This document shows, piece by piece, positions 17,428 to 50,318 of a DNA stretch of 64,000 nucleotides. The stretch lies in IMG/VR virus record IMGVR_UViG_3300023184_000024, positions 124,001 through 188,000 of that record; one strand, 5' to 3'. Position 1 is the first letter of the stretch, and every line of letters starts with the position of its first letter. Both the position numbers and the translations under genes were made by a program. The notes beneath the pieces are model-generated. The model had not been told where the DNA came from and did not search any database. It worked only from the letters and a program-made list of their open reading frames with translations.

Positions 17428-17434
17428 GGAAAAC

Positions 17435-24477: not shown

Positions 24478-25359
24478 ATGATAGAAACTCTTTGGCAACA
24501 GTTTTATAACAATGTTAAAGATACGTCCTGGCCCGACTGCCCAACAGAACAGGATTTTGATCAGTTGCCCGACCACATTAAACAAGAAATACTTGTACAA
24601 CACAACGGCGGCAAGTATCTAACTCGGTCAAATCAAAAATCCAACACCGACTTATTACACTATAATCCTATTTTAGAAACTGAAAACGATCAAAATCAGG
24701 ATTATCTGTATCAAGTCGATTTTGAACCCGAATGTGCAAAAACATTTGATGCCAATGGTATATGTGTGCACTACGATGCCTACATGGATTACGGTGGCAA
24801 GGATTTTGGGCAAAACTACTCTAGGGTAATACAACACATACACCCGGGCAGAAAATTTAACCATTGCCTTGAATGGTGCGCTGGTTCCGGTGCTGTGGGA
24901 TTTCGATTGTTGGCCGATGATGTTTGCACATATCTCGATTTAGCAGACATATATCAACCCAGTTTATCGGCTTGCAAAAAAACTATTGCCAACTTGGATA
25001 AAAAATATCAAGGTCGAGCAACTACTCATCATATTCAATACTTAGAATCTATACCACAAAATTGCACTTACGACTTAATTGTAGGAATCCCTCCTTGGTT
25101 TAGTCGTCGGGTATTCGGGTCAAGTGGTTACGAAACACGCCGAGGTATTGACACAAATTGGCAAATACACAACAACTTCTTTTCAAACGTTGGTAAGTAT
25201 TTAGATCCCAATGGATCTATATTATTATTGGAGAATCCTTGGGGCTCGGGCCCAGATGATTTTGCAGAAATCATTGACAAAAGTGGACTAAAGATAGTAC
25301 AATGTTTCATGGAACAACAAGAACGTAACTATTATTACCTTGAAGTAAAGCATCAATAA
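24478..25359 (+). CDS. SAM-dependent methyltransferase (HemK-like motifs)
   Basis: LEWCAGSGAVG, YDLIVGIPPWF. Confidence 0.75.
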   Translation: MIETLWQQFYNNVKDTSWPDCPTEQDFDQLPDHIKQEILVQHNGGKYLTRSNQKSNTDLLHYNPILETENDQNQDYLYQVDFEPECAKTFDANGICVHYDAYMDYGGKDFGQNYSRVIQHIHPGRKFNHCLEWCAGSGAVGFRLLADDVCTYLDLADIYQPSLSACKKTIANLDKKYQGRATTHHIQYLESIPQNCTYDLIVGIPPWFSRRVFGSSGYETRRGIDTNWQIHNNFFSNVGKYLDPNGSILLLENPWGSGPDDFAEIIDKSGLKIVQCFMEQQERNYYYLEVKHQ

Positions 25360-25361
25360 CA

Positions 25362-25685
25362 ATGGCACGAACTCAGGACGATGAGCTAACGCTCTACAAA
25401 AAAGAAGAGGTTAAGGTCATCGGTGATCGGGCTGTGCGTTTTCGTGACGTATGTGTGCACGAATTCAAAATGGGTGATGTTGATGACGTTGAAATTTATG
25501 CGGCTGAACCAATTTGGAAGTGGCAGCAAACAGAAGCAGGCAAATGGGTCATGGAAAATGCTTTTGAGCCGCCTTACTGGATACGTCAATCTGACTATGC
25601 CACGTGGGGACATGTATATCGTATCATGGCCAGACTAAGCGAACAACACGAAACCTTCTGGACATTAAAATGGGGCAACAAATGA
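25362..25685 (+). CDS. hypothetical protein
   Basis: 107-aa ORF in operon. Confidence 0.7.
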   Translation: MARTQDDELTLYKKEEVKVIGDRAVRFRDVCVHEFKMGDVDDVEIYAAEPIWKWQQTEAGKWVMENAFEPPYWIRQSDYATWGHVYRIMARLSEQHETFWTLKWGNK

Positions 25686-26650
25686 AAATATTAGTAACAG
25701 GCGGCCTAGGTCTCATCGGGCACAACGTTGTGCAACGATTAGAAGCTCTAGAGCACGAAGTAATCATCACCGACACTCGTACAACCTACGGCATCATCCC
25801 GCAGACAGAGATTGATTACTTGATGACGGAACGATTAAAGAAGATATCAGGCAACAACATTTATCACATTGATATCACTAATGCTGACAACGTTGATTGG
25901 CTAGTAAACAAGCACAAGCCAGAAGTCATCATCCATATGGCAAGCTTTCCCCGACAGAAAGTTGTCAACGCTAATCCTGCATGGGGAAGTCGTGTTATGA
26001 TGGAAGGCTTGATCAATGTTTGTGAGAGTGCCAAAAAGCACAATGTACAACGTGTAGTGTACATTTCTAGCTCAATGGTGTACGGCGACTTTGAAGATCA
26101 AGTCGAAGAAGACTACAACTGCCGGCCTATTGGGCAGTATGGCATTATGAAATTAACAGGAGAAGACATTGTCAAAGATTATCATCGTCGCGGCGCTTTT
26201 GATTATGCTATTATACGTCCCAGTGCAGTTTATGGACCGCTTGACGTCGAAGACCGAGTTGTTGCCAAATTCATGCTCACAGCCATGCGAGGTGGAACCC
26301 TCAAGGTCAATGGAGCAGGGGAGACGCTAGACTTTACCTATGTGGATGATGCCGCTGATGGTATTGTGGCAGCTGCCACCCTTGACCATGCTGGCAACAA
26401 TACCTACAATATTACTAAAAGTCATTCAGTGAGCTTGTTAGAAGCCGCTGAAATGATTGTGAAGATTGTGGGGCAGGGCGAGATTGAGTGCAGAGACAAA
26501 GATGCAGACTTTCCCAGTCGTGGTGCATTAAACATTGATCGTGCAAAAACTATCTTGGGCTACGATCCCCGAGTAGATGTAGAGGAAGGATTCCAAAATT
26601 ACTTCAACTGGCTTAACAATTCCGTTTACTGGTCTCCGAAAACAGTATAA
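25682..26650 (+). CDS. NAD-dependent nucleotide-sugar epimerase/dehydratase
   Basis: ILVTGGLGLIG, ISSSMVYG, YGIMK (YxxxK), DFTYVDD. Confidence 0.92.
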   Translation: MKILVTGGLGLIGHNVVQRLEALEHEVIITDTRTTYGIIPQTEIDYLMTERLKKISGNNIYHIDITNADNVDWLVNKHKPEVIIHMASFPRQKVVNANPAWGSRVMMEGLINVCESAKKHNVQRVVYISSSMVYGDFEDQVEEDYNCRPIGQYGIMKLTGEDIVKDYHRRGAFDYAIIRPSAVYGPLDVEDRVVAKFMLTAMRGGTLKVNGAGETLDFTYVDDAADGIVAAATLDHAGNNTYNITKSHSVSLLEAAEMIVKIVGQGEIECRDKDADFPSRGALNIDRAKTILGYDPRVDVEEGFQNYFNWLNNSVYWSPKTV

Positions 26651-27710
26651 CAATCTCCGTACAGAGATTTTAGATGCCACCGACGAGGTGCTTCGCAGTG
26701 GCCAACTCATGAACGGAAATAACACCGCAGAATTTGAAGATTGGCTTGCTAAAAAGAATCATGTGCGTTATGCAGTGACTTGTCATTCGGGCACACATGC
26801 GCTTGAGATTTTAGCCAGTTACTGGGCAACATGCGACCGGCTTGGGCCGCATCCTCCTACGGTGTTGATCCCCTCAATGACGTATGTGGCCACTGCCAAT
26901 GCATTTATACGTACAGGATGGGACGTACACATCATTGACACTGATGCACATGGGCTGATTGATATTAACAAAATACCACATGGTCTGAGTTATCAAGCTG
27001 TTGTGTTAGTTGGACTGTATGGTGCATCTGTCACACATCATGGCAACTATCGTGCATGGAACGAATGGTTGCGTCATGACACTGTTGTTATAGAAGATGC
27101 CGCACAACACTGGCTTTCTGCTGACTGCACAAGAACTGGACGTGGTGGCGGTGCTATTAGTTTTGACCCTATGAAAAATCTTGCCAGTTACGGCAATGGC
27201 GGTGCTGTGGTCACTGACAATATTGACTTGGCAGAATATGCCAGAGTTTGGAGAGACAACGGTAAACCTGCACATCGCAATACCGGAACCAATAGTCGTA
27301 TGAGTGAACTAGATTGCGCCCACATGTTAGTTAAATCTCGGCACATTGATCGTTGGCAGGCCCGTAGACAAAAAATTGCAGACCACTGGCGTGAACGATT
27401 CAAGGACACAGGTATACGTTGTTTAATTGATGATTCTAACGCACACAATCATGCTGTGCATAAGTTTGTAATAGATGTCAACGGGCGCGATACTTTAAAA
27501 GCAAACCTTGCATTGCGCAAAATTGATACACGAGTGCATTATGCAAATCCCTTGCACGAATTGCCGTTGTATAGATCCTATCCTGGTCCAGATATGTTGG
27601 CTGTGAGCTCTAGTTTTGCTCGTCGTGTACTGAGCTTGCCTATCTACCCTGAGCTGACAGACTTAGAAGTTGAATATATCAGCGATCAGGTGTTAGGCTG
27701 CGTCGCATAA
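26598..27710 (+). CDS. DegT/DnrJ/EryC1/StrS PLP-dependent sugar aminotransferase
   Basis: SGTHAL, IEDAAQ, SFDPMKNL, SLPIYP; conserved IPFTGLRKQY N-terminus lies upstream of GTG 26688; start inferred at ATT 26598. Confidence 0.88.
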   Translation: MTSTGLTIPFTGLRKQYNNLRTEILDATDEVLRSGQLMNGNNTAEFEDWLAKKNHVRYAVTCHSGTHALEILASYWATCDRLGPHPPTVLIPSMTYVATANAFIRTGWDVHIIDTDAHGLIDINKIPHGLSYQAVVLVGLYGASVTHHGNYRAWNEWLRHDTVVIEDAAQHWLSADCTRTGRGGGAISFDPMKNLASYGNGGAVVTDNIDLAEYARVWRDNGKPAHRNTGTNSRMSELDCAHMLVKSRHIDRWQARRQKIADHWRERFKDTGIRCLIDDSNAHNHAVHKFVIDVNGRDTLKANLALRKIDTRVHYANPLHELPLYRSYPGPDMLAVSSSFARRVLSLPIYPELTDLEVEYISDQVLGCVA

Positions 27711-29508
27711 ATGCATAGCTTGCAAGCCATTCCCACTCATAGCTCTTTTTAAGGGCTTCAAAATCCCCGCCCACTTCATTGTAGTATTCCACAGCGTCTT
27801 GTGCACCTTTGTGACTCCAGTGTCCATTTGCAATGGTACCCGAATCTTCTCTCAACCAAGCCTTTAATCTATATTCGTTCTCTATGTCTGGCAGACTATG
27901 TTGTAGTTTTAACACTTCACGGAATGCTGTGCGCCATGCCATCCAAGGTGATTCAGCATAGTTAGCTGTGCCTGATATGATGGGCACAACTTCATGTGGC
28001 TGTTCTAGTGTAAAGTCTAATCCATCCCCCACGGTTTCTAACACTAATTTCTTGTTGTAAGCAATCATGGCTTGATGACCATATACCAAGCCATTTACAG
28101 GATTGCCAGCATGGAAAATATAGTGCTTGGCTTGTTGCATACGATCAGGTTGCCAGTTCCAATCAAATCTGTGATCTACTTCTAGCTTGGCAAACACAGC
28201 AAAGAACCAAGGCGTTGTGCTTAATCTGGCAGCGGTTTGATATGCTGCCACACGACCGTTTACACCTGCACTGTGATGAATGTGATTGCAGTCCAACCCC
28301 TCCATTTGTACTGCCCACACCAAGTGTTGGTAATTAAACTCAGCATAAGGTTCGCCATTGCTGATAAACACAATGTCCAACGGCTGGTCCTTTAGTGCCC
28401 TGTGTGTTTTGTCAATGTAAGGATAATCATACAACTGTGTCTTAATGTACGGAACTGCTGTCTTGGGGACAACTGTGCTTGTGGCACCCATACTTAAGGG
28501 AACAATTGTTTTAGTTTTTTCTCTCCATAGCGGAACAATCACCGTGTTGTGTTGTACATAATCTGTGTTTGTAAATATTGCCAATGGTCCTTTAAACTCT
28601 AAACTACGCACGGCATCGGCCTGACTGTCATAGTTATGGTGTATAACCGGCATAGGTCTACGTGGAACCGGAGTACCAATGAAATTACAGTCATACCATT
28701 CTAACAATTCAAATTGATTGGCACGTTGAACAAACGTAGGTACATGCATGAAAAAAGTGTCGCCAAATTTTTCGGTGTTGCTGGCAAAAACATGCAACAT
28801 TGTCGCTTGCCATTGTTCAGGATGCCAACTGAAATCAAAATTTGAGTAATCACACACGCTTGAACATATCCAAATAAACTCATGTTGTTCTACGTCAGCA
28901 TTTTTTGCAATGCGTTTTAATGTGTCAAAATAATTGTCAAAATATCTAACACACTTTGTGGTATTGGCAATTTGCCCAACATTCCCATCCATGTGATCAA
29001 TTTCGTAAATTGCTGTGGCAACACGATTAGATTTTGCTTGTATCTGATCAACAAACTTAATATCAGTTGCACCCGGAATACAGTACTGTGGGCCGCCTGT
29101 GCGTTGATGTTGTGTGCCAAATTGATAAATGTAAGGAGGATCAGTTGGGTCTGGATGCCAGCTGAAATCAAAGTTTGTAACATCCACTCCCAAAGGTACT
29201 TTCCAATATTTGTCCGTGTCGACTCTTTTTAAAATTTGATCGTTATGATAATTAGTATCAGTGTAGCCCAATTTTGGTATTAAGTACGTACCTGAATCTT
29301 TTTGCCACTGGCTTGCCCAGGCATGCCGTTGACTTGACTGCCAGGGGGCTGGCTCCCAAAGCCAATTCCACCCAGTGTAGTCTACTAAGTAGTTTAAAAT
29401 CCAGAAATATCTTGTGCGTGATAATTGTTGAGCTTGTTCAATGCTTGTCACTGCCCGTTCGTGAGGGAACAAGTTTGGGGGGTTTCCGATATAAAAAACA
29501 TCAAACAT
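27679..29508 (-). CDS. glycosyltransferase-like multidomain protein
   Basis: internal repeats F.W.P..WQ; C-terminal domain paralogous to 44687..45613. Confidence 0.6.
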   Translation of the reverse strand: MFDVFYIGNPPNLFPHERAVTSIEQAQQLSRTRYFWILNYLVDYTGWNWLWEPAPWQSSQRHAWASQWQKDSGTYLIPKLGYTDTNYHNDQILKRVDTDKYWKVPLGVDVTNFDFSWHPDPTDPPYIYQFGTQHQRTGGPQYCIPGATDIKFVDQIQAKSNRVATAIYEIDHMDGNVGQIANTTKCVRYFDNYFDTLKRIAKNADVEQHEFIWICSSVCDYSNFDFSWHPEQWQATMLHVFASNTEKFGDTFFMHVPTFVQRANQFELLEWYDCNFIGTPVPRRPMPVIHHNYDSQADAVRSLEFKGPLAIFTNTDYVQHNTVIVPLWREKTKTIVPLSMGATSTVVPKTAVPYIKTQLYDYPYIDKTHRALKDQPLDIVFISNGEPYAEFNYQHLVWAVQMEGLDCNHIHHSAGVNGRVAAYQTAARLSTTPWFFAVFAKLEVDHRFDWNWQPDRMQQAKHYIFHAGNPVNGLVYGHQAMIAYNKKLVLETVGDGLDFTLEQPHEVVPIISGTANYAESPWMAWRTAFREVLKLQHSLPDIENEYRLKAWLREDSGTIANGHWSHKGAQDAVEYYNEVGGDFEALKKSYEWEWLASYAFMRRSLTPDR

Positions 29509-30628
29509 GATCAGAATCGACGAAATTTACAATAATACATTTTGGCCTTTTATCAAAAAAAATCTACCATTAACTCGTATGTGGTTTCACGACCCACCCG
29601 GGTCAACCGCAGTCGACACGCTGATGGTCAATGGCAACGGCAATTCTCGCACAGAGTTTAATTATATATTGTTTCACGACCAAGAGCCAATATATCCGGA
29701 CATACACAGAGAATTATTTGTTCAAATTGAGATGCTAAACTCTGATCTTTGTGACATGAACTTTGGGGCAATCAGAAAAGGCATTGTCACCAGTGAATAC
29801 AACAGCGATGCGCTAAAGCATATATGCAACCTCAATCAGTGGAACAGCTATTATTATTTTTTCCACGGTTGGGCAGCCTTAGATTGGTATCGTGGATATG
29901 ACAAAACTTACTTGATGTCTGCACCCGAAGATCGTGTGTGCAACAAGGCATTCATTAATCCCAACAGAATCATAGGTGGTAAACGAGATCATCGAGTTTT
30001 GTTAATGTATCATATTTTAAAAAGCCAAAGTTTAGATGCGTGGATTAGCTGTCCAAAAGTTTGTCCGGTTGAAGATATGTCTATAAATGACATTGCCATG
30101 AAATTTATTCCAAGGTACAATGACATTGTTGATGTGCTATCCAGCGCAACCTTGCCCATGCACATGCCCGATGAATATGATCATCCCATGCACAGTTGTT
30201 GGTTAAGCTTGTTTGACCAATGCAACGAAACCCTGGCATACGTGGTCACCGAAACTGCGTTTTTTGGGCGTAAGAATCATTTAACTGAAAAAACATTTAA
30301 ACCTATTTGTTTACGCATGCCTTTTGTACTGGCATCAACTGCTGGCAGTCTTGAATACTTAAAAATGTATGGATTTAAAACATTCGATAGTATCTGGGAT
30401 GAAAGCTATGATTCAGAAACAGATGATCTTTTGAGATTGGAAAAAATAGCCGCGTTGTTGAAATCGTTGAATGACTTGTCTGTGGACCAACGAACTAGTA
30501 TGCTCAAAGCTTGTATACCGATATTAGAACATAATTATCAACATTTCTATGGCGGTGGATTTGAAAAAATCCTCTGGGCCGAGTTACAAGGTATGTTAAA
30601 TCAAATGCAAATTGATTATAGTCTATGA
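29507..30628 (+). CDS. glycosyltransferase-like protein (GT10-like TEK motif)
   Basis: VVTET...LTEKTFKP...PF, GFKTF..IWDESYD. Confidence 0.55.
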   Translation: MIRIDEIYNNTFWPFIKKNLPLTRMWFHDPPGSTAVDTLMVNGNGNSRTEFNYILFHDQEPIYPDIHRELFVQIEMLNSDLCDMNFGAIRKGIVTSEYNSDALKHICNLNQWNSYYYFFHGWAALDWYRGYDKTYLMSAPEDRVCNKAFINPNRIIGGKRDHRVLLMYHILKSQSLDAWISCPKVCPVEDMSINDIAMKFIPRYNDIVDVLSSATLPMHMPDEYDHPMHSCWLSLFDQCNETLAYVVTETAFFGRKNHLTEKTFKPICLRMPFVLASTAGSLEYLKMYGFKTFDSIWDESYDSETDDLLRLEKIAALLKSLNDLSVDQRTSMLKACIPILEHNYQHFYGGGFEKILWAELQGMLNQMQIDYSL

Positions 30629-31809
30629 TAAGTTTTTGCTATGACAAGTTAGCACAACCCGACATTGGTTATCCAAATTTGGCACGGCACCAGGCGCAAC
30701 CCTATACAACAGGCTGGAGAGAATTTGACCATCATTGGCCAAGAACTACACCTCTTAGACTATTAATGTACTTGCGGCAAGCATCTATTCCATTTACGGT
30801 AGTTACTGTAAACTCTAATTCGGTTGCCGGCTCCTGGTATCCGATCGCACTGGCCTGGTTTGATTTTTCACTGGATTATTTTGAACTTTTAACACCAACT
30901 GTTCGCCAGTTGTTGTCTAATAAAGTTGTTAAAATTCTATTTTACTATCACGAAGGTGATAATCCAGTGCGCATCAAGCATCGGCTCGATGACCTTTGCC
31001 GGCAACATCAACTGCCCGATGACTGTTATTTTTTTGTTAGTGCAAATACTGCTGCCAGCAAATTAAAAAACTTTGCTTATTTTTCTGAACATGAATTCTT
31101 TTTTAGATATGTTAACCGCTATCAACAAGCAAAGTTTGTTGGCACTAGGTCTAAAATTTTTACTGCATTAAATAGAACTCATAAATGGTGGCGTGCCAGC
31201 TGTATGAGTGATTTATATTTTTCTGGGTTGCTCGAAAACAGCACATGGAGTTATAACACCGATTGTACCATCAACGACAACGAGGACGACAACCCGCTTG
31301 AACTGGATTCAGTAGATAGGTGGAGAGATAATGTACATAATTTTATAAATCAAGGTCCATATACCTGCGACAATTATACCAGCGCCAGTCACAACGATCA
31401 TCATGACGTCAACGTTGAGTTATATCAAAGTTACTGTCATATTGTGCTTGAAACACACTTTGATGCTGACCAAAGCCAAGGAACGTTTATAACAGAAAAA
31501 ACCTGGAAGGTAATTAAATATGGGCAACCATTTGTTATAATTGGTCCTGTTGGTAGTCTTCAATCCTTGCGTGATTCAGGCTATCGCGTGTTTGATCATG
31601 CAATTGACAACTCTTACGATGGCATAGTTGACAACACACAACGATGGTTTGCTGTTAAAAAAGCATTGACTGCTGTACAAAACTCCAACTTACCAAAATG
31701 GTTCGACACGTGTCAATCAGATATTCAACACAATCAACAATTATTTGATAGTCGTCTGTTTTTGCCATTAAATATCTTACTAGGACAAATAAATGAACAA
31801 CATAGTTAG
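30625..31809 (+). CDS. glycosyltransferase-like protein (GT10-like TEK motif)
   Basis: IVLET...ITEKTWK...QPF, GYRVF..IDNSYD. Confidence 0.55.
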   Translation: MISFCYDKLAQPDIGYPNLARHQAQPYTTGWREFDHHWPRTTPLRLLMYLRQASIPFTVVTVNSNSVAGSWYPIALAWFDFSLDYFELLTPTVRQLLSNKVVKILFYYHEGDNPVRIKHRLDDLCRQHQLPDDCYFFVSANTAASKLKNFAYFSEHEFFFRYVNRYQQAKFVGTRSKIFTALNRTHKWWRASCMSDLYFSGLLENSTWSYNTDCTINDNEDDNPLELDSVDRWRDNVHNFINQGPYTCDNYTSASHNDHHDVNVELYQSYCHIVLETHFDADQSQGTFITEKTWKVIKYGQPFVIIGPVGSLQSLRDSGYRVFDHAIDNSYDGIVDNTQRWFAVKKALTAVQNSNLPKWFDTCQSDIQHNQQLFDSRLFLPLNILLGQINEQHS

Positions 31810-32833: not shown

Positions 32834-32835
32834 TC

Positions 32836-34314: not shown

Positions 34315-34412
34315 TTGTAGATAAATGGGTCTCGTTTGCGTAGTTCTTTGATTTTTCGACGATATTTAATTTCTAAAACTATTCTATTGTAAATTCTTAA
34401 AATCCATTTCAT
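34311..34412 (-). CDS. 33-aa peptide MKWILRIYNRIVLEIKYRRKIKELRKRDPFIYK
   Basis: ATGA-coupled on both sides; below the ORF track cutoff. Confidence 0.7.
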   Translation of the reverse strand: MKWILRIYNRIVLEIKYRRKIKELRKRDPFIYK

Positions 34413-39239: not shown

Positions 39240-40548
39240 ACCACTCTTTTAAATTAGGGAACGTTTCATTAAAATTTTTATATCGTCGAGCATCGTACTG
39301 CAAATGGAACTCTTTAAAATCATGCAACAATGTTGGCATGTCAAATGTTTCACTGTGCGGAGTTTTTACAACGTCCAAGTAATCAATTAATCTTTGTGTG
39401 TGATTTATTTCGTGCTCGTGCAAGTAACTGTGGTCTTTGTGTCGCATTAACCACTCAGTCAGATTCTGTTTGTAATGTTCTCGCAAATCCTCACTCAGTA
39501 CTAAAGCACTCTGAAAGCTGGGAAAACGCAAGATGTTTAATGTAAAATTAAGGTACTCACGACCGTATTGTTTTTTCCAAGCAACTAATTGATCTAAATG
39601 GTCAGACAAGCTGTCCAAGCACAAGGCATTAATGGTGCACATACAATGAACTACTATACCTGCATCCAATAGTTTTAACACATTGTTGCACCAAGCACGG
39701 TAATCCAACCCGTCACGGATGTATTCGGCTTGGCTTCCTGTGGCTTCCATGGAAGTGTAGATTTCAACTTGTAAGCCCTTGGTGCTGGCCAACAGTCGAT
39801 CTACATCTACGTCTGCTCCTAGATTTGAATTAATAGCCAGGCGTGTATTAGTTCGCCCAGGGTTGTTTTTAAACCAATCAATCAGTTTCCAGGTGTAGCC
39901 ACTCATTAGCGGCTCTCCGCCGGTGATTCTTAGTTCTTGTAGTGTTCTGTGGAGGTCTGATTCCCACCATTCAAAGAACGCTTCCACGTACGGATTAGTT
40001 TCACCGAATTTATACAATTGAGCACTATTATGCTCGTGAGTAAAATGGTTACGACCGTCTGACTCCAGTTTAAGGTAAGGTCCGTTCTTTTTAATGTCGT
40101 TGACCCATGTACTACTAAAAGCAGGATTGCAATAACTGCAAGCAAACTGGCAAGTTCTATCAAACGCAATTTCCAAGGTGCGGAGATCAACGTCTTGGTC
40201 AACAGGAGTGTTATATGCTTCATTCAAGGCCTTTATAGGATAAATTTTACTTTTGTACACACGGTCACTGACAGCATTGGTGTCCATGTCTTCAATTTTC
40301 CAGCAGTATTCGCAACCAGGTGGACGTTCGCCAGCTAGCATCTGGCGCCGGTCTTCTTTCTTTTGTGCTGTATTATGTATTGCTTTGGGATTGGTTTTGA
40401 ACTCAGCACCAATGGTGTGTGCAGGAGGATGATGGCAACTGGTTGTTTGTCCTGAACCTAACCATATAGTAGCATTATACCATTTGGCCGCACAAAAGCT
40501 TGAACTTTTAGTGTCTAATATTTGCGTTTTAAAGTCGCGATCGTTCAC
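39226..40548 (-). CDS. twitch-domain radical SAM protein
   Basis: FCAAKW..SCHHP, CEYCW, CQFACSYC, GGEP. Confidence 0.9.
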   Translation of the reverse strand: MNDRDFKTQILDTKSSSFCAAKWYNATIWLGSGQTTSCHHPPAHTIGAEFKTNPKAIHNTAQKKEDRRQMLAGERPPGCEYCWKIEDMDTNAVSDRVYKSKIYPIKALNEAYNTPVDQDVDLRTLEIAFDRTCQFACSYCNPAFSSTWVNDIKKNGPYLKLESDGRNHFTHEHNSAQLYKFGETNPYVEAFFEWWESDLHRTLQELRITGGEPLMSGYTWKLIDWFKNNPGRTNTRLAINSNLGADVDVDRLLASTKGLQVEIYTSMEATGSQAEYIRDGLDYRAWCNNVLKLLDAGIVVHCMCTINALCLDSLSDHLDQLVAWKKQYGREYLNFTLNILRFPSFQSALVLSEDLREHYKQNLTEWLMRHKDHSYLHEHEINHTQRLIDYLDVVKTPHSETFDMPTLLHDFKEFHLQYDARRYKNFNETFPNLKEWYGRL

Positions 40549-41687
40549 TGTGTATTTTCTCTGATGAAATTTAAAAATCGGTTTGGAAAGTTGTCAACCA
40601 AATCTCTGCGATATTCTGCTAGTCGTTGTTGATTATATTTACAAATATCTTGCGAGGCTGCTAGGAAATCAACTAAATCTCCGCGACATAAATCTTCAAC
40701 CACTTCGGCAATTCTTTCGATGCGATCTAAATCATGTTCTATACTGTCAAAACTTTCATCAATTAAATTGCCAAAAGTTTTAAATCCAATTCTATGCATG
40801 TCTCGATAAAACCCTGCATTGGCCACAGCAATCCAGGGATGGGCCATGGCAATAGGTTTCCATATCTTCTCGGTGCGGAAGCTGTAGGGATTATGAAAAA
40901 TAGTTTCAGTTACTAGGCTAAAGTATGTGTCAATGTACGGCTCGGCCTTGAGGTATGCTTCGCCCCATTCGTTGTTGAACAAGCTGTGTTTGACCAAACT
41001 TGTATTGGTGGTATCTAAATTATCAAGCTGATCGCTGTATCTATCAACTTCGTAGTGTTTGGGCAATAGGCGCAGTGGTGATTCTTTAGCCATTAAGTTT
41101 TCCCCGTTGTGCCATAATGGTAGACGAGTTGCACCTGCTGTGCCCAATGTACTAAGACAAGTATACAGACTGTGTTCTAGTAGTCCAGTTGTTCTAAATT
41201 TTTCCAACAACCATTTACGATGCTGACGATGCCGTCCATTTAAAAATAAAAACTTATAGGGCTTATGTGTTTTTTTGTAGATGTCAGTCCATCTCTGAGC
41301 AACAACATCATTGTCATCAAGTTTGAGCAAATTATCAACAAATCCATCGTAGTTGTAATAACAGAATTCTGGGCTCATGTCGCCGCCGGCCAGCAACATT
41401 ATTTTTCTTTCACGTGCCAACTCTGTTATATTATATCGACGCAACTGCCCTATCATTGTGTCGGCACCTTCCCAGGGATTGCTAAAAATAATGTTGGCTT
41501 GGCCAGATTGTGCAACTTCTTCTATTAGTTTGTGGTAATGCTCAAATTGCCAAGGCCCCAACAGATATGTAGCGCCAGGCTCGATATTAATCTTATCAAA
41601 GAACTGGAACTCGCCGTCTAATGCCGAGCCGATAATATCGTAAATTCCGCAGTGGTATCCACTGTACAACTTAACGTTTTTTTGCAT
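40545..41687 (-). CDS. glycosyltransferase-like protein (GT10-like TEK motif)
   Basis: FLFLNGR.R.HR, SLVTET, TEKIWKP, GFKTF..LIDESFD. Confidence 0.55.
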   Translation of the reverse strand: MQKNVKLYSGYHCGIYDIIGSALDGEFQFFDKINIEPGATYLLGPWQFEHYHKLIEEVAQSGQANIIFSNPWEGADTMIGQLRRYNITELARERKIMLLAGGDMSPEFCYYNYDGFVDNLLKLDDNDVVAQRWTDIYKKTHKPYKFLFLNGRHRQHRKWLLEKFRTTGLLEHSLYTCLSTLGTAGATRLPLWHNGENLMAKESPLRLLPKHYEVDRYSDQLDNLDTTNTSLVKHSLFNNEWGEAYLKAEPYIDTYFSLVTETIFHNPYSFRTEKIWKPIAMAHPWIAVANAGFYRDMHRIGFKTFGNLIDESFDSIEHDLDRIERIAEVVEDLCRGDLVDFLAASQDICKYNQQRLAEYRRDLVDNFPNRFLNFIRENTQ

Positions 41688-43620
41688 GGTACTCGCACTC
41701 AGCCCACCAAGACTGCATTTCAGGAAATGCTGTTAAGAAACTAGTCCCTCGTCGACGGTCGTGCTCTGAGAAGAATTGATAAAAGTCTCCTTTGGCTGTG
41801 CTATGATCATCCAATTGCTTTTGCCGCATCCACGAGATGTCTCTTTCTAGTCGTTGCACTTCGTAGTCCTTGAATCCTTGAAATGGCGATAGATTGGATT
41901 CTAGATTGTTGGACATAAAAGTCTTGGAAGATTCTAACACACAGGCATAGCTTTCGGGAAGTATTTGTAAGCTTTGCCAACTGGGTTGTCGTAGTACCGG
42001 TGTATCAAACCACACACGCTGATATGTCTTACTGTGTTTTTTTCTTAGTTCTAAAATTCCGTTAAGCAGTTTCTGGAAACTAGTAACCGATAAATTATTC
42101 ATGGTCACAATGAAAGTCAAACTATTATAACTAGGAACTTGTGTTAGATATTGATCGACCCTGCTCCAAACAAGATCAAAATCCATGCCGTGTCTAATGT
42201 ATTCGGCTTGACTTCCCCAGGCATCCAAACTTACATACTGCATGAAATGTTCAATCTGCCCATTGCAAATTTTCTTAACATAATCTAGGTATCGATCAAA
42301 TAGCCGTTGTTCCACTGAAAAATTAGAAGTCACATTGAGGTGTAATTTAGGATTGGGATTCTCTAACACGTAATCAAACACCTTGTAGGTATTCTTATCC
42401 ATTAGGGGTTCTCCACCAGTCATGCGAAAGTGTTCAAGCTCAGGATATAACTCGGGCCACCATTTCCAGAACGCATCAACATAGGGGTTGTCTTCGCGTA
42501 CCGGTATTGGTTTGTTATGTCCAACAAAATGCTCAGGTGCATTGTGTGGAGTTGACGTCGGATATGCACCGAATCGATCTATTTCGTCTTGCCAACTTGA
42601 GCTAAACTGAGGGCTACAATAACTACATTTAAGATTGCAGGCATGATTAAAATTAACTTCAACATAGCTGGGATTGATATTATCAGTCCACTCTGCACTA
42701 ACAATTTTACCAAAGTCTTTGGCTGCCCAAGGTTCTCCACTACGATAAAATCTATCGCTGAGATTGCCAAGGTCCTCCATGTTCCAGCAATAGCTACACT
42801 CACTGGGACGTTTGCCGTTGAGCATGAGCCTTCGCTGTTCTTTTTTGTGCGTTGTATTGTGCAGGGCACTGGGGCTACGAGTTATATCCTCAATGGGAAT
42901 ACGGTGTAACGGTGGGTGGTAACAACTGTTGTTTAATCCGGTGGGCAGGTGCAGGCTGACCTGTTTCCATTTGGCCAAACACAGGCTGGGACTATACTCA
43001 TCCAATCTCATGCGCATTTTTTCTGCATCATCTAGAAACTTTGATTTGAATCCATCTTCGACTTTTTCTGTTGGCAATTCTGCTAGGCTTTTTGCTTTTA
43101 ATCGATTGAGGTATGTGAGTGTGCGATCAAATATATCACTGCTGGATAATTCTAATTCTTGTTTCATCATTTGCGCAAACTCACCGAGATCTGTGTCAAT
43201 GTCAATTACCAAATCTGCACCTGTGGTATCCAGAGGATATTGTGCATAATAATTTAAATGATAGGAAATGGTGCTTTGAGCATTTTCCATCGGGTCGTCT
43301 AACTGTCTTTTATTTGCTCGTTGTTGACCGGCCAGCACCCATTCGCGTCTAATGCACTTGTCAAGATTCCCATGTATGATTACCACTGGCCGGTCCGGCC
43401 AATGTTGCTTGAGCAATGGTACATTCACACAGTGGGTTAGTATTATTGGTTCTGATTCAAGCCCAATTGTGTCATTGGATAGATATCGAAATTTTGTTTG
43501 ATCGCCTTTATTTTCATAGAATTGTTGATCATAAACAAAATTAGATTTAAAGTCTCGCTGACCTTGTGAATACAAGTAGTAACGGTTGCCTCCTGCACCT
43601 GGATAGTAGCCAATAATCAT
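41671..43620 (-). CDS. twitch-domain radical SAM protein with extra N-terminal domain
   Basis: N-terminal YPGAGGN domain; LCLAKW..SCYHP, CNLKCSYC, GGEP. Confidence 0.88.
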   Translation of the reverse strand: MIIGYYPGAGGNRYYLYSQGQRDFKSNFVYDQQFYENKGDQTKFRYLSNDTIGLESEPIILTHCVNVPLLKQHWPDRPVVIIHGNLDKCIRREWVLAGQQRANKRQLDDPMENAQSTISYHLNYYAQYPLDTTGADLVIDIDTDLGEFAQMMKQELELSSSDIFDRTLTYLNRLKAKSLAELPTEKVEDGFKSKFLDDAEKMRMRLDEYSPSLCLAKWKQVSLHLPTGLNNSCYHPPLHRIPIEDITRSPSALHNTTHKKEQRRLMLNGKRPSECSYCWNMEDLGNLSDRFYRSGEPWAAKDFGKIVSAEWTDNINPSYVEVNFNHACNLKCSYCSPQFSSSWQDEIDRFGAYPTSTPHNAPEHFVGHNKPIPVREDNPYVDAFWKWWPELYPELEHFRMTGGEPLMDKNTYKVFDYVLENPNPKLHLNVTSNFSVEQRLFDRYLDYVKKICNGQIEHFMQYVSLDAWGSQAEYIRHGMDFDLVWSRVDQYLTQVPSYNSLTFIVTMNNLSVTSFQKLLNGILELRKKHSKTYQRVWFDTPVLRQPSWQSLQILPESYACVLESSKTFMSNNLESNLSPFQGFKDYEVQRLERDISWMRQKQLDDHSTAKGDFYQFFSEHDRRRGTSFLTAFPEMQSWWAECEYHAKKR

Positions 43621-44693
43621 AGTTCTAACAGTTGTAATAATCTATGTGAAAAAAATATGTTTTTGTTATTTTGATTTTTAATTTTAGAAACAAGTTCTTT
43701 ACATTGCAAATAATCAACATGCGTTTTTGACAGCACATCGTGATCAATGTATGTACCGTTGTTAATCTCCCACGAGTCCGGAGTTGGTGTTGGTGTTCTG
43801 CTCCAAGTTCCCCAGTCGTCTAGTTGATGTAGTACTCCTTTGAACCCATAGTCGCAACAAATGCGAACAAAATTTTCCATGTCTAAAAAGTTATTTTTTT
43901 GCACAGCAAAATTTAATGTTGTGATATGTTGCTTATTGATTGTTTTTACATAATCAAAGTTCTCTAAAAGTATTTTCCAACTTCCGCCTAATCTAACATT
44001 TTCATAGACCTCAGACGACCCTGCATCAACACTGATTCCTAAATCTACAATATTGTTTAAAATTGGACTGTCAGACAGTTGTTTTTTAATCAGTAGCCCG
44101 TTGGTAAGCAATTTAAAAATCTGTGTGCTTTTTGGTTTCCAAGACTTAATAAGAGGTCGGGTAATCTGACTGGCCAGCGGGTCGCCGTTGCCTGACATGG
44201 TAATTCTGATAGGTCTTTCAAAATTGTCAAGCCATTGGATGATGCGTTCAACGTCTTTCTTTTTACTTTCAACAACATCACCGTCTAAATGCATGATTGG
44301 GGCTCGTCGGCAACTGGGGCAATGTAAATTGCAACTATCATCAATGTTGATGCTTATGGTGTTTATCTGATTGATGATATTTTGTTTTTTAATTCCGCAA
44401 TGATCTACTGCGCACCAGGTAAACTTTTTATTTTCAACGTCATCTTGCAAAGTTTTTGCAATTGGACTATTCCATAGTTCGTCAAGACTATTAAAATCTT
44501 TTACTTTACCAACCGGGATTGGCAACCAACCGTCACAGGTGCATACAAAACAATCAGAATTGGAATCAACAATCAACGACATGTAAGGAACATTGCAACT
44601 ATTTGTAATAGTTTCTGTTGCGCCTTTGCCTCTAGGCATGGATTTAAGCTTGTGTGCCAGTCCCGGAGTTAGATCAAAATATGACATTACCAA
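43617..44693 (-). CDS. radical SAM protein with N-terminal Cys-rich domain
   Basis: CFVCTC.GWLP, CNLHCPSC, SVDA..VYENVR.GG. Confidence 0.85.
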   Translation of the reverse strand: MVMSYFDLTPGLAHKLKSMPRGKGATETITNSCNVPYMSLIVDSNSDCFVCTCDGWLPIPVGKVKDFNSLDELWNSPIAKTLQDDVENKKFTWCAVDHCGIKKQNIINQINTISINIDDSCNLHCPSCRRAPIMHLDGDVVESKKKDVERIIQWLDNFERPIRITMSGNGDPLASQITRPLIKSWKPKSTQIFKLLTNGLLIKKQLSDSPILNNIVDLGISVDAGSSEVYENVRLGGSWKILLENFDYVKTINKQHITTLNFAVQKNNFLDMENFVRICCDYGFKGVLHQLDDWGTWSRTPTPTPDSWEINNGTYIDHDVLSKTHVDYLQCKELVSKIKNQNNKNIFFSHRLLQLLEL

Positions 44694-45613
44694 CCTTCTT
44701 GCTGACGTATTACATCAATTTCGCGGACCATGACTCCTTGATTGTGCCAGTTACTTCGATAGTGATGTTTAAAAAACCCACTACCGCGGTCATCTAACAA
44801 TACAATGGGAAGATCGAGTTGTGTTGATAAATCTTCGGCCACTCTTCCTGCTACTACTTCTGGATCATGGTCTTTGACAGTATCCCAAAGCTCGGCCAGC
44901 ACATCAAAATTTTGCACTAGTTTATAGTCCCAGTTACTCAACATTGTCATGTAGGTTCCCTGCCTTGCTCCTGCAATTGACCAAGCGCCATTTTCTACAT
45001 CTCTTCCAACGTTGTGCCAAATCGTTAAATTCTCAAGATTCTTTTTATGAACCATGGTTCGAAAATCATTGACACTGGGCTTTGCGCCTTTGTTAAGACA
45101 CATTTTAACACCTTCACGGAATCCTGCTCGCCATGCCTGGAATGGAGACCCATTTGGGTAGGTTGTTGAGTAGCAGTCGTGCATTGCCCAATACAAGGGG
45201 TCGAAACAAAATTCAACCAATGTTTCATCACGTCCATCAGAGTTTTCGTGTGTGCGCATATTCCAAATATGTTCACGTGTCCACGAACTAATTCCTCCGT
45301 TGCCGTACATGAGGCCGTTGACATGATTTCGAGCTCTCCATCTATAAACTGCTTTGGCCCAATCATCATTGGTGTATTCTAAGGTAAGATTAAAAAACTT
45401 TTCGTCGGGCAAATTATCTCCGTCGATTAAAATAAACCGTTCAGTTGTGCTGGCATCTGCGGCTGCTTTATGGGCCGCATCACTGCCGTTGACTCCGTCA
45501 ACTCTGATTGCCCAAGGAATTGCATTTTTAATCTTTACCCAAAATTCTTCTTTTTGTGGCTCGTCATAGCTTAGATAAACACAATCAAGATCAGCAATAT
45601 CAATTTGTTCCAT
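44687..45613 (-). CDS. glycosyltransferase-like (GT-A, DxD) protein
   Basis: YLSYDEP, FILIDGDN. Confidence 0.6.
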   Translation of the reverse strand: MEQIDIADLDCVYLSYDEPQKEEFWVKIKNAIPWAIRVDGVNGSDAAHKAAADASTTERFILIDGDNLPDEKFFNLTLEYTNDDWAKAVYRWRARNHVNGLMYGNGGISSWTREHIWNMRTHENSDGRDETLVEFCFDPLYWAMHDCYSTTYPNGSPFQAWRAGFREGVKMCLNKGAKPSVNDFRTMVHKKNLENLTIWHNVGRDVENGAWSIAGARQGTYMTMLSNWDYKLVQNFDVLAELWDTVKDHDPEVVAGRVAEDLSTQLDLPIVLLDDRGSGFFKHHYRSNWHNQGVMVREIDVIRQQEGW

Positions 45614-45938
45614 TATTTTTTAAACTCCATTTGGTGTGTAACTGGTCACAGTTTACTATCACGGCCACATCACAGGGATCACAGCATGCCCCTTGAGTCT
45701 GATGTGGTTTTAATTTTTGTACAAAATTGTTGACATTTAACACAATTTTGTTATCTTTAACATGTATATTGCGCAGTGATTGGGCAAACTGTTCTTTGGT
45801 TATTTCAATGTAATTACCTGGTAGGTCTTCCATTGCGTAAAATGTCGGCTGTCCGTTGCCGTCATAGTAAAGTCTATAAAATATAGGGCCAGGCAAAGGA
45901 ATATCATGTAGTATTGTCCAAAACTCATCGGGCGTCAT
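45600..45938 (-). CDS. hypothetical protein
   Basis: 112-aa ORF in operon. Confidence 0.7.
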   Translation of the reverse strand: MTPDEFWTILHDIPLPGPIFYRLYYDGNGQPTFYAMEDLPGNYIEITKEQFAQSLRNIHVKDNKIVLNVNNFVQKLKPHQTQGACCDPCDVAVIVNCDQLHTKWSLKNNGTN

Positions 45939-46713
45939 TGAGCCATTCCTTTACATTATAGTGAAATGCGCCCCACTGAGCAATGGTGTTTATGCGAAGA
46001 TTGTCGTTCCATTCCCACACAAGCTCGTCTGTCCAATTTTCAGTGGCTGTGCCTGCGATATGTTTTTTCATATGTACAATTTTTGGATATTCACTGAACG
46101 GCAATGTGCATTTTTCCGGGCCAATTATTTGAGCGGCCATTGCATATACAAGATCTGTTGTGGGCACTTTGTCAGGAAATTTTAATATCTTTTGAAATTT
46201 GTCCCAATTTTCAAATATGCTTTTAACAAGATTAAAAAACTCTTGCGCATCCTTGCTAAGCCGCCAATATGTTATTGCATTGTAAACATCGGGTAAGTTG
46301 TTTTCATCAAATGTGCGTCGGTAATGCCGTGCATCACTGACTTCATCTTTCCAGTTTCTACACCCGGTACTGACAACAATATCTCTATGTCTAAACATAT
46401 TCCACCAGTGTTCAATTGAACTAGTAATCAACATGTCTGCTTCAAGTTTAATTGTTTCTCTAAATGGGGTCGCATGAAATACTTGCCAATCATTGCACTG
46501 ATGGTTGCCGCCGTTGCTTTGATCTCCGTTGGGCAAAGGCACGACATGATCAAACACAGGATCACTGCAACGATTTAATGTCATGACAGCAATTCTAGCA
46601 TCGGGGTGAAACTTTCTTATACTCTGAGCCAGTATTGACGCACACGCAACATAATCAACACTGTCTGTGTTCAGTGCCGGTATAAGGTAGCCTTGTTCTT
46701 CAATGGGCTTCAA
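45925..46713 (-). CDS. GT8-like glycosyltransferase
   Basis: DYVACA..LA.SI, TPF.ETIKLEADM, VHMK. Confidence 0.65.
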   Translation of the reverse strand: MKPIEEQGYLIPALNTDSVDYVACASILAQSIRKFHPDARIAVMTLNRCSDPVFDHVVPLPNGDQSNGGNHQCNDWQVFHATPFRETIKLEADMLITSSIEHWWNMFRHRDIVVSTGCRNWKDEVSDARHYRRTFDENNLPDVYNAITYWRLSKDAQEFFNLVKSIFENWDKFQKILKFPDKVPTTDLVYAMAAQIIGPEKCTLPFSEYPKIVHMKKHIAGTATENWTDELVWEWNDNLRINTIAQWGAFHYNVKEWLNDAR

Positions 46714-47503
46714 TTATTTTCCCCAAATGCTTTTTACCCATGACATGTAGGTCGGTGCCAAAAAATCCAATATTTCTACGAGCCCCTTTAACATCAACCC
46801 AATGTATATCAAACGAATCTTGTGCCAGCTGTGTAATTGCGTGGTCTGGCATGATTGTTGCAAGGTCCCATGGAATACTATCCACAGCCAGTGTGTGCCC
46901 GTTAACAATGCCCAATGCAATGCTCAATGCATAATCGTTGCGATAGGTTGATCGTTGTATGCCATACAAGTTTCTATAGTGCTGCCAATTATTTTTAATC
47001 ATCTGCATTGAATCAAAAATATATTGTGCGGTATTTGATTTACGAAACAGCATCACTGTTGCCCACCACATGGGCAACTTGTAATTGCCAAACCAATTAG
47101 ACTCATCAAAGTATCCAGGGCCTGTAATGTCCCAAGCGGTACGATGACACACAAAATCTAGATTAGAATTAAACAATACTTTCAATTTTGAACTGGCCAC
47201 AATATAATCAGCATCCAATACCAACGTTTGATCGTAGGGAGTTAACCTATATGCATCAACCCGGTTGGCATTGTACCAAGGAACAGTATGACCAATGTCG
47301 GAAAAATGCCGTTGGCCTCCCAATTCTTTGTCTACGACTATTACCTGTTCAAAATTAAAATTATCTGGAACCCGAGTGTTATCTGTTACCACTGTGGTAC
47401 CAATGCCAAGGTGTCTGCGAATATTTGCTGCACTCCAGTTGGCCATAGACAAATAATCTATGTCATCGTTGTTAAATGCAAAAATTAATGCGCCTGTGCT
47501 CAT
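46700..47503 (-). CDS. GT8-like glycosyltransferase
   Basis: TPYDQTLVLDADY (DxD), RNDYA, LHVMGK. Confidence 0.7.
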   Translation of the reverse strand: MSTGALIFAFNNDDIDYLSMANWSAANIRRHLGIGTTVVTDNTRVPDNFNFEQVIVVDKELGGQRHFSDIGHTVPWYNANRVDAYRLTPYDQTLVLDADYIVASSKLKVLFNSNLDFVCHRTAWDITGPGYFDESNWFGNYKLPMWWATVMLFRKSNTAQYIFDSMQMIKNNWQHYRNLYGIQRSTYRNDYALSIALGIVNGHTLAVDSIPWDLATIMPDHAITQLAQDSFDIHWVDVKGARRNIGFFGTDLHVMGKKHLGKIIEAH

Positions 47504-47808
47504 CTTTTTTGACTTACTTCAGCATAGTCAAGCAACCAGGCATTCATCTGTTCTTGCCAACGTTGTTGTGCTGCCAATTCTAGTTCATCGACGTCGATAC
47601 GCACAGGATTTTCATACAAGTCAAGAATCACTGCTGATTCTCTGTCAGGGCATGCACTTAGTACAGTCAATAGTTCAGGACCTGCTCGCCACATGCCACC
47701 GGCATACGCAAAAATCATTTTTGCCTGGTATTTTTCTTTGAGCACTCGTTTGGCTGCTTGATGATCAAAACGTGCTTTTGAATGTGAAATTAATTGATTG
47801 GTATCCAT
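47500..47808 (-). CDS. hypothetical protein
   Basis: 102-aa ORF heading the minus-strand modification operon. Confidence 0.7.
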   Translation of the reverse strand: MDTNQLISHSKARFDHQAAKRVLKEKYQAKMIFAYAGGMWRAGPELLTVLSACPDRESAVILDLYENPVRIDVDELELAAQQRWQEQMNAWLLDYAEVSQKR

Positions 47809-47835
47809 AATGTTTTAATTATACAGGAATAATTG

Positions 47836-47863
47836 AAAAAAGTAAAGGGCCCGCAGGCCCTTT
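47836..47863 (-). terminator. intrinsic terminator after structural genes
   Basis: AAAGGGCC-TGCG-GGCCCTTT then ACTTTTTT on minus strand. Confidence 0.75.
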
Positions 47864-47882
47864 GAATAGGTTGGTTGTCCAA

Positions 47883-48878: not shown

Positions 48879-48887
48879 TTTTTTTCC

Positions 48888-50264: not shown

Positions 50265-50318
50265 TTGTTTTTCACTCCGTCATCTGTGAGTATTTACCTT
50301 ATAATTTTCTATACATAT

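Follow-up and report, generated by a model that had tools for sequence, protein, structure and literature searches.

A conserved island of predicted sugar-tailoring enzymes, radical SAM proteins and glycosyltransferase-like genes in a freshwater jumbo phage

A conserved block of about 22 kb, located at 25.4-47.8 kb of a 64,000-nucleotide window of a freshwater phage genome, very probably constitutes a phage-run glycan-building island. The window comprises bases 124,001-188,000 of one 352,754-bp virus record (IMGVR_UViG_3300023184_000024), which comes from the assembly of a lake metagenome of the Joint Genome Institute (JGI); coordinates are window positions unless marked as genome positions. 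The phage genome has direct terminal repeats, a 100% complete rating and a G+C content of 42%. Judging from sequence, the enzymes encoded in the island are soluble, are conserved as a set and belong to kinds with nucleotide-activated sugars as substrates, and structural modelling indicates that these include at least three phage-specific transferases of the GT-B fold, alongside GT-A-like candidates. A glycan pathway, already put forward in an original prediction made from the letters of this DNA, is the best-supported reading of these genes. The fuller version of this reading, in which the glycan is built onto a virion protein, we hold tentatively and with somewhat less than even confidence.

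The conservation of the block goes far beyond chance. The original prediction had suggested a synteny survey as a check, and the outcome speaks for it: we surveyed 80 related loci, 43 of them full-length (21 kb, within 10 kb of the carbamoyltransferase), plus eight extended relatives, and found the island genes to be co-conserved, with gene order and content kept in about 40 of the 43 full-length loci and in all eight extended ones. Every core gene from 25604 to 43620 was found in 35-43 of the full-length loci, and the genes from 44687 to 50924 all stand in the same order in the eight extended relatives. Median identities were 66-78% for the radical SAM proteins and 42-48% for a glycosyltransferase-like family (hereafter family A) and a conserved 362-aa protein. 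The island thus belongs to the conserved gene content of a freshwater phage lineage that is very abundant; matches to near-identical sequence occurred only in lake-water and freshwater DNA runs, and a nucleotide search of GenBank phages with the phage sequence gave no matches. Single-sequence scans of Pfam, PHROGs and NCBIfam left 11 of the 22 island proteins without assignment.

The core sugar-tailoring enzymes of the original prediction, namely an NDP-sugar epimerase/dehydratase, a DegT aminotransferase, an amidinotransferase and a NodU/TobZ carbamoyltransferase, were confirmed by Pfam matches or, for the amidinotransferase, by a profile built from its orthologues. The first is an NAD-dependent sugar epimerase/dehydratase of the short-chain dehydrogenase/reductase (SDR) type (25604-26650, plus strand; Pfam Epimerase E 2e-44, GDP_Man_Dehyd E 6.5e-30), with GxxGxxG at residue 33 and YxxxK at residue 179. 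Translation of this protein probably begins near residue 23-27 of the listed open reading frame (ORF). It was present in 35 of the 43 loci with a median identity of 69%, and there are four SDR paralogues in the phage genome. It is followed by a DegT/DnrJ/EryC1-type aminotransferase dependent on pyridoxal phosphate (26688-27710, plus strand; Pfam E 4.5e-60; 37 of 43 loci), whose nearest solved relatives are 2oga (deposited as 'Transaminase'), glutamine-scyllo-inositol transaminase, QdtB and WbpE (E 1e-34 to 1e-27). We take 2oga, QdtB and WbpE to be C-3 keto-sugar aminotransferases.

The amidinotransferase (31793-32833, plus strand; 37 of 43 loci, median identity 70%) is of the AGAT/StrB1/SxtG type. 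A single-sequence Pfam scan gave no match for it. The profile of 25 orthologues, searched against the PDB, retrieved AGAT (E 1.6e-24), SxtG (1e-20), HsvA (1e-19) and StrB1 (8e-18). The AGAT match falls in two segments that cover both halves of the protein, with the C-terminal catalytic Cys motif aligned; H192, D194 and C331 are invariant across the 25 sequences, and the motifs GHGD and 'GGISCCTQDVRRRG' can be read from the sequence. Homology over both halves and a Cys-His-Asp set of catalytic residues are the marks of the AGAT/StrB1 (pentein fold) enzymes. Meanwhile, the NodU/CmcH/TobZ-type O-carbamoyltransferase (32836-34314, minus strand; Pfam Carbam_trans_C E 3e-48, Carbam_trans_N E 6e-34) has both the Kae1-like N-terminal and the YrdC-like C-terminal domain of its family, scoring 118 and 164 bits where the cut-offs are 24 and 27. 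Its nearest relatives are NovN (E 4e-51), GdmN (E 2e-47) and TobZ (E 4e-30), and 276 viral relatives in IMG/VR share 66-82% identity with it, many of them on contigs of 320-365 kb.

Six Fe-S radical SAM enzymes had been predicted in the interval, and all six genes (starting at 35481, 36757, 37977, 39226, 41671 and 43617) do carry CX3CX2C. Five of them, arranged in tandem on the minus strand from 35481 to 43620 with one family A gene intervening, pass the cut-off of the NCBIfam model NF033640, 'twitch domain-containing radical SAM protein' (curated cut-off 170 bits, full-length model), with scores of 286-397 bits; a sixth member of NF033640 lies at genome 288599-289714. Copy 1 (35481-36776; 286 bits; 42 of 43 loci, 73% identity) has Cys residues at 9, 27, 28, 80 and 83, followed by C133-X3-C-X2-C. 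In copy 2 (36757-37980; E 1.6e-104, 350 bits), the Pfam SPASM match covers residues 9-78, ahead of Radical_SAM at 119-276. Copy 3 (37977-39239; 397 bits) has a median identity of 78% in relatives and is matched by more than 7,800 metagenome clusters (90% identity), while copy 4 (39226-40548; 293 bits) is of the type that travels with the carbamoyltransferase. Copy 5 forms the C-terminal 440 aa (323 bits) of a 649-aa protein with an N-terminal 200 aa of unknown kind (41671-43620); its CX3CX2C is at residue 328 and it is 33% identical to copy 4.

In these NF033640 proteins the SPASM/twitch Cys cluster precedes CX3CX2C instead of following it. Their alignment shows invariant C9, C28, C74 and C77, and then C123, C127 and C130, so that a four-Cys auxiliary motif stands N-terminal to CX3CX2C. 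The N-terminal region aligns to the C-terminal twitch of BtrN (profile positions 6-82 against BtrN 185-261, E 2.5e-5, with no stretch passing the threshold alone), an alignment that is limited to the twitch domain and places it at the opposite end of the protein. The five copies are mutually only 20-33% identical, while each is 66-78% identical (median) to its own orthologue in related phages, which points to five distinct, individually maintained functions. The remaining radical SAM gene (43617-44693, minus strand; Pfam Radical_SAM E 7e-8, SPASM at residues 33-99) also has an N-terminal SPASM/twitch-like Cys cluster, but it is of a different type and is a paralogue of 19741-20805. It is missing at this position in all eight extended relatives and occurs in only 2 of the 43 loci; by this comparison, it appears to have been duplicated or inserted into the island recently.

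The neighbourhoods of homologous enzymes in other genomes provided insights into their substrates. All four bacterial contexts examined for NF033640 homologues, on a Methylomagnum plasmid and on three metagenomic bacterial contigs, were polysaccharide clusters, in which the neighbours included GT2/GT4 genes, Wzm/Wzt exporters, dTDP-sugar genes, polysaccharide deacetylases and AsnB-type amidotransferases. Several NF033640 homologues are fused to GT1/GT4 domains. These bacterial clusters resemble the island in placing the same family, above the same cut-off, beside GT2/GT4, SDR and other sugar-modifying genes. They differ from it in their Wzm/Wzt exporters, UbiA or polyprenyl genes and AsnB-type amidotransferases and in having one or two copies instead of five, and neither an AGAT-type amidinotransferase nor a carbamoyltransferase was seen in the four contexts.

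Among phages, Vibrio phage K566 interleaves four NF033640 copies with GT8 and GT4-like genes. Ralstonia phage RsoM2USA encodes a protein (RsoM2USA_202) that is 51% identical to copy 4 and, 2 kb away, a carbamoyltransferase 44% identical to that at 32836-34314, and a marine virus contig holds a radical SAM gene, a carbamoyltransferase (49%) and an amidinotransferase within 5.4 kb; altogether, the pairing of NF033640 with a carbamoyltransferase was found in three phage lineages. In cyanophage S-SCSM2R, the homologous amidinotransferase adjoins KdsA and KdsB. The genome under study holds two mini-clusters of similar make-up, one at genome 204701-209007 (a DegT fragment, a 170-aa protein, family A, radical SAM and amidinotransferase) and one at genome 329000-334014 (family A, UDP-sugar dehydrogenase, a 190-aa protein and amidinotransferase). 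Collectively, these contexts all point to sugars as the substrate class.

The same evidence bears on whether the radical SAM enzymes could instead act on peptides, with SPASM/twitch proteins cross-linking or epimerising residues of a phage protein in the manner of ribosomally synthesised peptides with post-translational modifications (RiPPs) and the sugar enzymes being unrelated. Among solved structures, a RiPP cyclopropyl synthase matches the radical SAM core best, anSME and SkfB are also among the matches, and at least 17 radical SAM genes, some of B12 type, are present in the genome. However, the matches to RiPP enzymes are confined to the common radical SAM core, whereas the contexts and fusions of NF033640 concerned glycans and glycosyltransferases in every case examined. 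Moreover, no precursor-like peptide or RiPP recognition element (RRE) domain was seen, and a family A transferase stands among the radical SAM genes of the island, which also form a pair with the carbamoyltransferase. We consider peptide modification highly unlikely.

The original prediction counted about seven glycosyltransferase-like genes, a number that stands in part. Three of them are paralogous copies of family A, located at 29507-30628 (plus strand), 30625-31809 (plus strand; family A profile E 1e-90) and 40545-41687 (minus strand; E 1.5e-71); the second keeps the R, E, E-K, G, R and N of the invariant columns. The three copies gave no matches in Pfam, PHROG, NCBIfam or PDB sequences, and a search of GenBank phages with a family A protein gave none either. 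A confident AlphaFold model built with 25 sequences (predicted local distance difference test, pLDDT, 89.9; predicted template modelling score, pTM, 0.89) indicates a GT-B fold, its two Rossmann domains matching solved GT-B enzymes over most of the chain. Nearly all the matches that Foldseek listed for this model were GT-B glycosyltransferases. WaaG and PimA, peripheral GT-B enzymes with lipid-linked acceptors, stand among its fold matches, and AlphaFold DB clusters named glycosyltransferases matched it with E-values as low as 9e-9. Membership of CAZy GT10 (alpha1,3-fucosyltransferases) was considered and dropped, the Pfam GT10 model giving no match. Family A has ten paralogues in the phage genome, and public data hold 12,257 representatives at 50% identity with E<=1e-10 (14,551 with E<=1e-3). 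Copies elsewhere in the genome include genome 205880-207001, 329000-330319, 344408-345442 and 350865-351845. Many family members are tandem two-domain proteins, and the ESM Atlas holds fusions to MTS methyltransferase or SDR epimerase domains.

The other four transferase candidates of the predicted seven rest on weaker matches. Two are GT8-like (GT-A) paralogues on the minus strand: copy 1 at 45925-46713 (phrog_1903 E 1e-7) and copy 2 at 46700-47503, which occurs in all eight extended relatives and in whose sequence the motif 'LDADY' can be read. With the GT8-like profile, all 17 PDB matches were to glycogenin-1, over the region from nucleotide binding to DxD, at non-significant E-values of 0.5-0.8, and hhalign gave no match to a GT8 protein of a Vibrio phage. 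The third is a 308-aa GT-A-like candidate (44687-45613, minus strand), 70-76% identical in all eight relatives, for which Pfam GT2 gave an E-value of only 0.17 and no PDB sequence match was found. Its 'FILIDGDN' is conserved in all seven aligned 308-aa orthologues (ILVDGDN in one). The fourth is the C-terminal half of a 609-aa virus-only protein with repeated FDxSWxPD-type motifs (27679-29508, minus strand; 42 of 43 loci), which aligns to the 308-aa protein as a paralogue (BLAST E 1e-5) and is possibly a degenerate GT-A domain; in both proteins, the DGD motif was read by eye in the alignment. The 609-aa protein had no Pfam, PHROG, NCBIfam or PDB sequence match, and its model was poor (pLDDT 54), too weak for a fold search. 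It contains four copies of an FD(F/W)SW(H/Q)P(D/E)-type motif that are invariant among orthologues. The conserved 362-aa protein (34409-35497, minus strand; 42 of 43 loci) matched nothing in Pfam (24 members scanned), PHROGs, NCBIfam, PDB or the ESM Atlas, and its relatives were detectable only within the phage lineage. Profiles of family A and of the 609-aa, 362-aa and 308-aa proteins returned nothing usable from PDB sequences. The whole phage genome holds about 20 transferase candidates.

The cluster had been described as aminoglycoside-like, and the chemical analogy behind that description holds: the enzymes of streptomycin, butirosin and tobramycin biosynthesis (StsC/BtrS, StrB1, BtrN, TobZ) belong to the same families and follow the same logic, from ketone to amine to guanidine, with O-carbamoylation and a twitch radical SAM enzyme. 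The combination of a DegT-type aminotransferase and a StrB1-type amidinotransferase that characterises such clusters is present. Unlike those systems, the island has no cyclitol synthase, carries its twitch domains N-terminally instead of C-terminally, includes many transferases of a phage-only family and resides in the genome of a lytic-type jumbo phage. Across all 352,754 bp of that complete genome, neither PF01761 (2-deoxy-scyllo-inosose/DHQ-type) nor PF01658 (inositol-phosphate) synthases matched at E<=1, whereas control genomes did match. A true aminoglycoside (aminocyclitol) cluster is therefore rejected, and 'aminoglycoside-like' describes the chemistry and not the class.

A diffusible small molecule, such as an aminoglycoside-like or nucleoside-like pseudo-oligosaccharide acting on the host or on competitors, would fit the close mirroring of antibiotic tailoring enzymes by StrB1/SxtG-, NovN/GdmN/TobZ- and 2oga/QdtB-type proteins and the BtrN-like twitch. 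The authors of the S-SCSM2R study even read related genes as 'antibiotic synthesis genes' (PMC12801897). On the other hand, besides the lack of either kind of cyclitol synthase, family and transmembrane scans of the island showed neither a transporter nor a resistance gene, and the ten family A paralogues and three amidinotransferases spread over mini-clusters fit several glycan decorations better. We regard a small-molecule product as decidedly improbable.

If the product is a glycan, the next matter is its acceptor, which may be the virion or another phage protein, a proposal we favour while giving it a little under an even chance. The likeliest candidates are encoded next to the island. Beyond its minus-strand operon, downstream in the window, lie two fibre-like genes on the same strand (47883-50264), encoding a Ser/Thr-rich 331-aa protein (47883-48878) and a 458-aa fibre/appendage-like protein (48888-50264). 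Ser and Thr make up 30.5% and 20.5% of these proteins, respectively, against 13.7% genome-wide, and the 458-aa protein is paralogous to 13444-16218, which has Peptidase_G2/pre-neck appendage matches. In all 12 of the large relatives, the gene for the 458-aa fibre-like protein shares a strand with the carbamoyltransferase gene and stands 13-18 kb away from it. Farther on, also on the minus strand, a giant ORF from 51068 runs past the window end to genome 189245; its 4,725-aa product has FG-GAP and CBM5/12 matches, is possibly a fibre or an adhesin, and could serve as a glycan acceptor. The Ser/Thr-rich fibre proteins or this giant FG-GAP/CBM protein are the most likely, though unproven, acceptors. 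What makes a phage protein the likeliest acceptor is the combination of soluble island proteins, the lack of a priming transferase, a flippase and a known source of modifiable DNA bases, the fibre adjacency in the 12 relatives, and the amidinotransferase of S-SCSM2R, which was reported in purified virions (PMC12801897).

Virus-made glycans on virus particles have precedents. Giant viruses have clusters for the glycosylation of their fibrils, and work by Freeman and co-workers from 2023, cited in PMC12619734, is reported to describe virus-encoded glycans on the capsids and tail tubes of mycobacteriophages. As in these systems, genes for sugar modification and transfer stand beside structural genes in the island and the glycan would be made by the virus, with the difference that the island is known from its genes alone. 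To our knowledge, the known virion glycosylation systems use ordinary glycosyltransferase families and have no radical SAM arrays, amidinotransferases or carbamoyltransferases.

The glycan could also be placed on the host. Here, unusual activated sugars would be added to lipid-linked or other envelope glycans of the host, for example to block superinfection or change adsorption. This host-surface remodelling, an alternative named in the original prediction, is suggested by the bacterial NF033640 homologues in exported-polysaccharide clusters with Wzm/Wzt transporters, by the KdsA/KdsB genes for 3-deoxy-D-manno-octulosonate (Kdo) next to the S-SCSM2R amidinotransferase, and by WaaG and PimA among the fold matches of family A. 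It lacks the phage-encoded genes for priming and export that it would call for: a polyprenyl-phosphate priming transferase (PF02397), a WecA/MraY-type enzyme (PF00953) and a Wzx flippase (PF01943) are all absent from the phage genome. Nor was any transmembrane segment found among the island proteins, all of which appear soluble, and the roughly 20 transferase candidates suggest a glycan built whole by the phage and not a host glycan that is edited. Remodelling of the host envelope is thus unlikely in our view.

Several points weigh against the whole reading, glycan pathway and virion acceptor together. First, the position beside Ser/Thr-rich proteins, from which the virion glycan was originally argued, holds as an adjacency but says little about the acceptor, because the order is conserved across the whole lineage. 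Second, at 47818-47863 (minus strand), where the Ser/Thr-rich gene gives way to the first gene of the island, a sequence scan located a hairpin that resembles an intrinsic terminator, has a T-run and overlaps a promoter-like site, TTTACT-17-TATAAT. The hairpin is GC-rich, the layout of hairpin and promoter-like site is kept in seven of eight relatives with compensatory stem changes, and its strict motif occurs once in the genome. This conserved terminator and promoter set the fibre genes apart from the island, on which ground their co-transcription was rejected, and suggest that the island is its own transcription unit. Third, the related modules of the distant phages K566, RsoM2USA, CP220 and S-SCSM2R do not stand beside fibre genes. 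Fourth, no sugar nucleotidyltransferase is encoded in the phage genome, so that the activated sugars must come from the host. In addition, four transferase candidates and the 609-aa and 362-aa proteins are without assignment, and the order of the steps and every radical SAM role are ones that we infer. Finally, the single structure that family A matches best is that of a DNA glucosyltransferase, T4 BGT.

This last match raises the alternative of DNA hypermodification, also named in the original prediction, in which family A would glycosylate phage DNA and the tailoring enzymes would decorate the sugar or base, shielding the genome from host nucleases. The one phage DNA carbamoyltransferase so far characterised, which acts on 5-hydroxymethylcytosine (5hmC), belongs to the same two-domain family as the island enzyme; it co-occurs with, and depends on, a ThyA-like hydroxymethylase, and glycosyltransferase-like neighbours are the pattern of contigs that were not enriched as carriers of modified cytosine (Yang et al. 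2021, PMC8670742). The island carbamoyltransferase differs from that system on both counts, its neighbours being glycosyltransferase-like and the ThyA-like dCMP hydroxymethylase (PF00303) being absent from the complete genome, so that a 5hmC carbamoylation system can be set aside. The other known entry enzymes, represented by TET/JBP (PF12851), C5-methyltransferases (PF00145) and TGT/DpdA (PF01702), are absent from the genome as well. DNA hypermodification is disfavoured since these entry enzymes are lacking, and we deem it quite improbable.

Returning to a glycan built by the phage, the enzymes can be arranged into a putative pathway. A keto-sugar would arise from a host-supplied nucleotide-diphosphate (NDP) sugar through oxidation or dehydration by the SDR, possibly also by a BtrN-like twitch radical SAM enzyme. 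The keto group would then be converted into an amine by the DegT enzyme, and the amine into a guanidino group by the AGAT-type amidinotransferase with arginine as the donor. A hydroxyl of the sugar would be O-carbamoylated by the NovN/TobZ-type enzyme at the expense of carbamoyl phosphate and ATP. Each of the five radical SAM enzymes with an N-terminal twitch might make a separate change to the sugar skeleton, such as oxidation, epimerisation, dehydration, decarboxylation or C-C bond formation, and the product would be assembled by the transferases on an acceptor without lipid linkage. More speculatively, the lineage might build a cationic guanidino and carbamoyl glycan on its own virions, its five radical SAM enzymes carrying out undescribed sugar-skeleton reactions; we find this specific proposal rather doubtful.

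These findings have implications for the understanding of phage-encoded glycan pathways, which are barely explored, given that the island is large, conserved and very abundant in lakes. It links three kinds of proteins without a known function, namely NF033640, a huge glycosyltransferase-like family and conserved orphan proteins, and its well-understood neighbours (DegT, amidinotransferase and carbamoyltransferase) make the orphan chemistry testable in vitro. If the more speculative proposal is true, it would give the first function to NF033640 and to the GT-B-like family, which counts more than 12,000 proteins and has no Pfam model. Guanidino or carbamoyl sugars on virions would be a new kind of decoration, which could alter adsorption, stability or host recognition.

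The nearest published system is the module of Campylobacter phages CP220 and CPt10, the function of which is unsolved and whose genomes carry 11-12 radical SAM genes (Timms et al. 2010, PMC2853527). Its make-up resembles that of the island: in a large myovirus, a single block brings together five radical SAM genes, a single AGAT-like amidinotransferase gene and those of two nucleotide-diphospho-sugar transferases. That amidinotransferase is homologous to the one in the island (profile E 1.2e-17). Unlike those of the island, its radical SAM proteins are built in the usual way: CX3CX2C comes first, at the N-terminus, and the Cys clusters follow at the C-terminus. The CP220 module has no homologues of the carbamoyltransferase, family A, the 609-aa protein or the 362-aa protein (the comparison did not extend to SDR and DegT), and it spans about 9 kb against the 22 kb of the island. 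The reasoning applied to the island yields a hypothesis for this module, unexplained since 2010. The richness of the present genome in radical SAM genes (among them 6452-8011 and 19741-20805), which include B12-binding types of about 500 aa, is unusual for a phage and comparable only to that of CP220/CPt10.

Some genes at the margins of the island complete its description. The methyltransferase that the original prediction included is one of the softer assignments: the MTS-like candidate at 24478-25359 (plus strand) matches Pfam MTS below the cut-off (E 0.002) and phrog_35227 at E 7e-31, was present in none of the 80 related loci, and is by this comparison peripheral, outside the conserved core. 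Between it and the SDR lies a small conserved ORF of 107 aa (25362-25685, plus strand) with no family match, found in 26 of the 43 full-length loci. On the minus strand, a conserved 112-aa ORF (45600-45938) is 39-46% identical in all eight extended relatives, and the first gene of the operon encodes a 102-aa protein (47500-47808) that is 57-65% identical in all eight.

Genes typical of jumbo phages lie upstream of the island in the window: they encode a B12-type radical SAM protein, a 2-oxoglutarate (2OG)-Fe(II) oxygenase, a pre-neck-appendage/Peptidase_G2 fibre protein, a solute receptor of TctC type, a MoxR ATPase together with its VWA partner, and ThyX. A MoxR-type AAA ATPase (18456-19559) and a DUF2201 metallopeptidase/VWA protein (21261-22556) flank a radical SAM gene there. 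The receptor, of the tripartite tricarboxylate transporter (TctC) family, is encoded at 17324-18325 and might hint at the host lineage; a scan of a genome collection found no close bacterial relative of it. The 'moraphage' lineage (PMC12619734) was rejected as a description of this phage: those phages infect Bacteroidota, have genomes of up to 307 kb, and are described with no mention of radical SAM. In RsoM2USA (125035-129043), three DUF6071 proteins flank the pair of radical SAM and carbamoyltransferase genes. The phage studied here has one DUF6071 gene, at genome 111789-112043, and another adjoins a family A gene in a separate metagenome contig.

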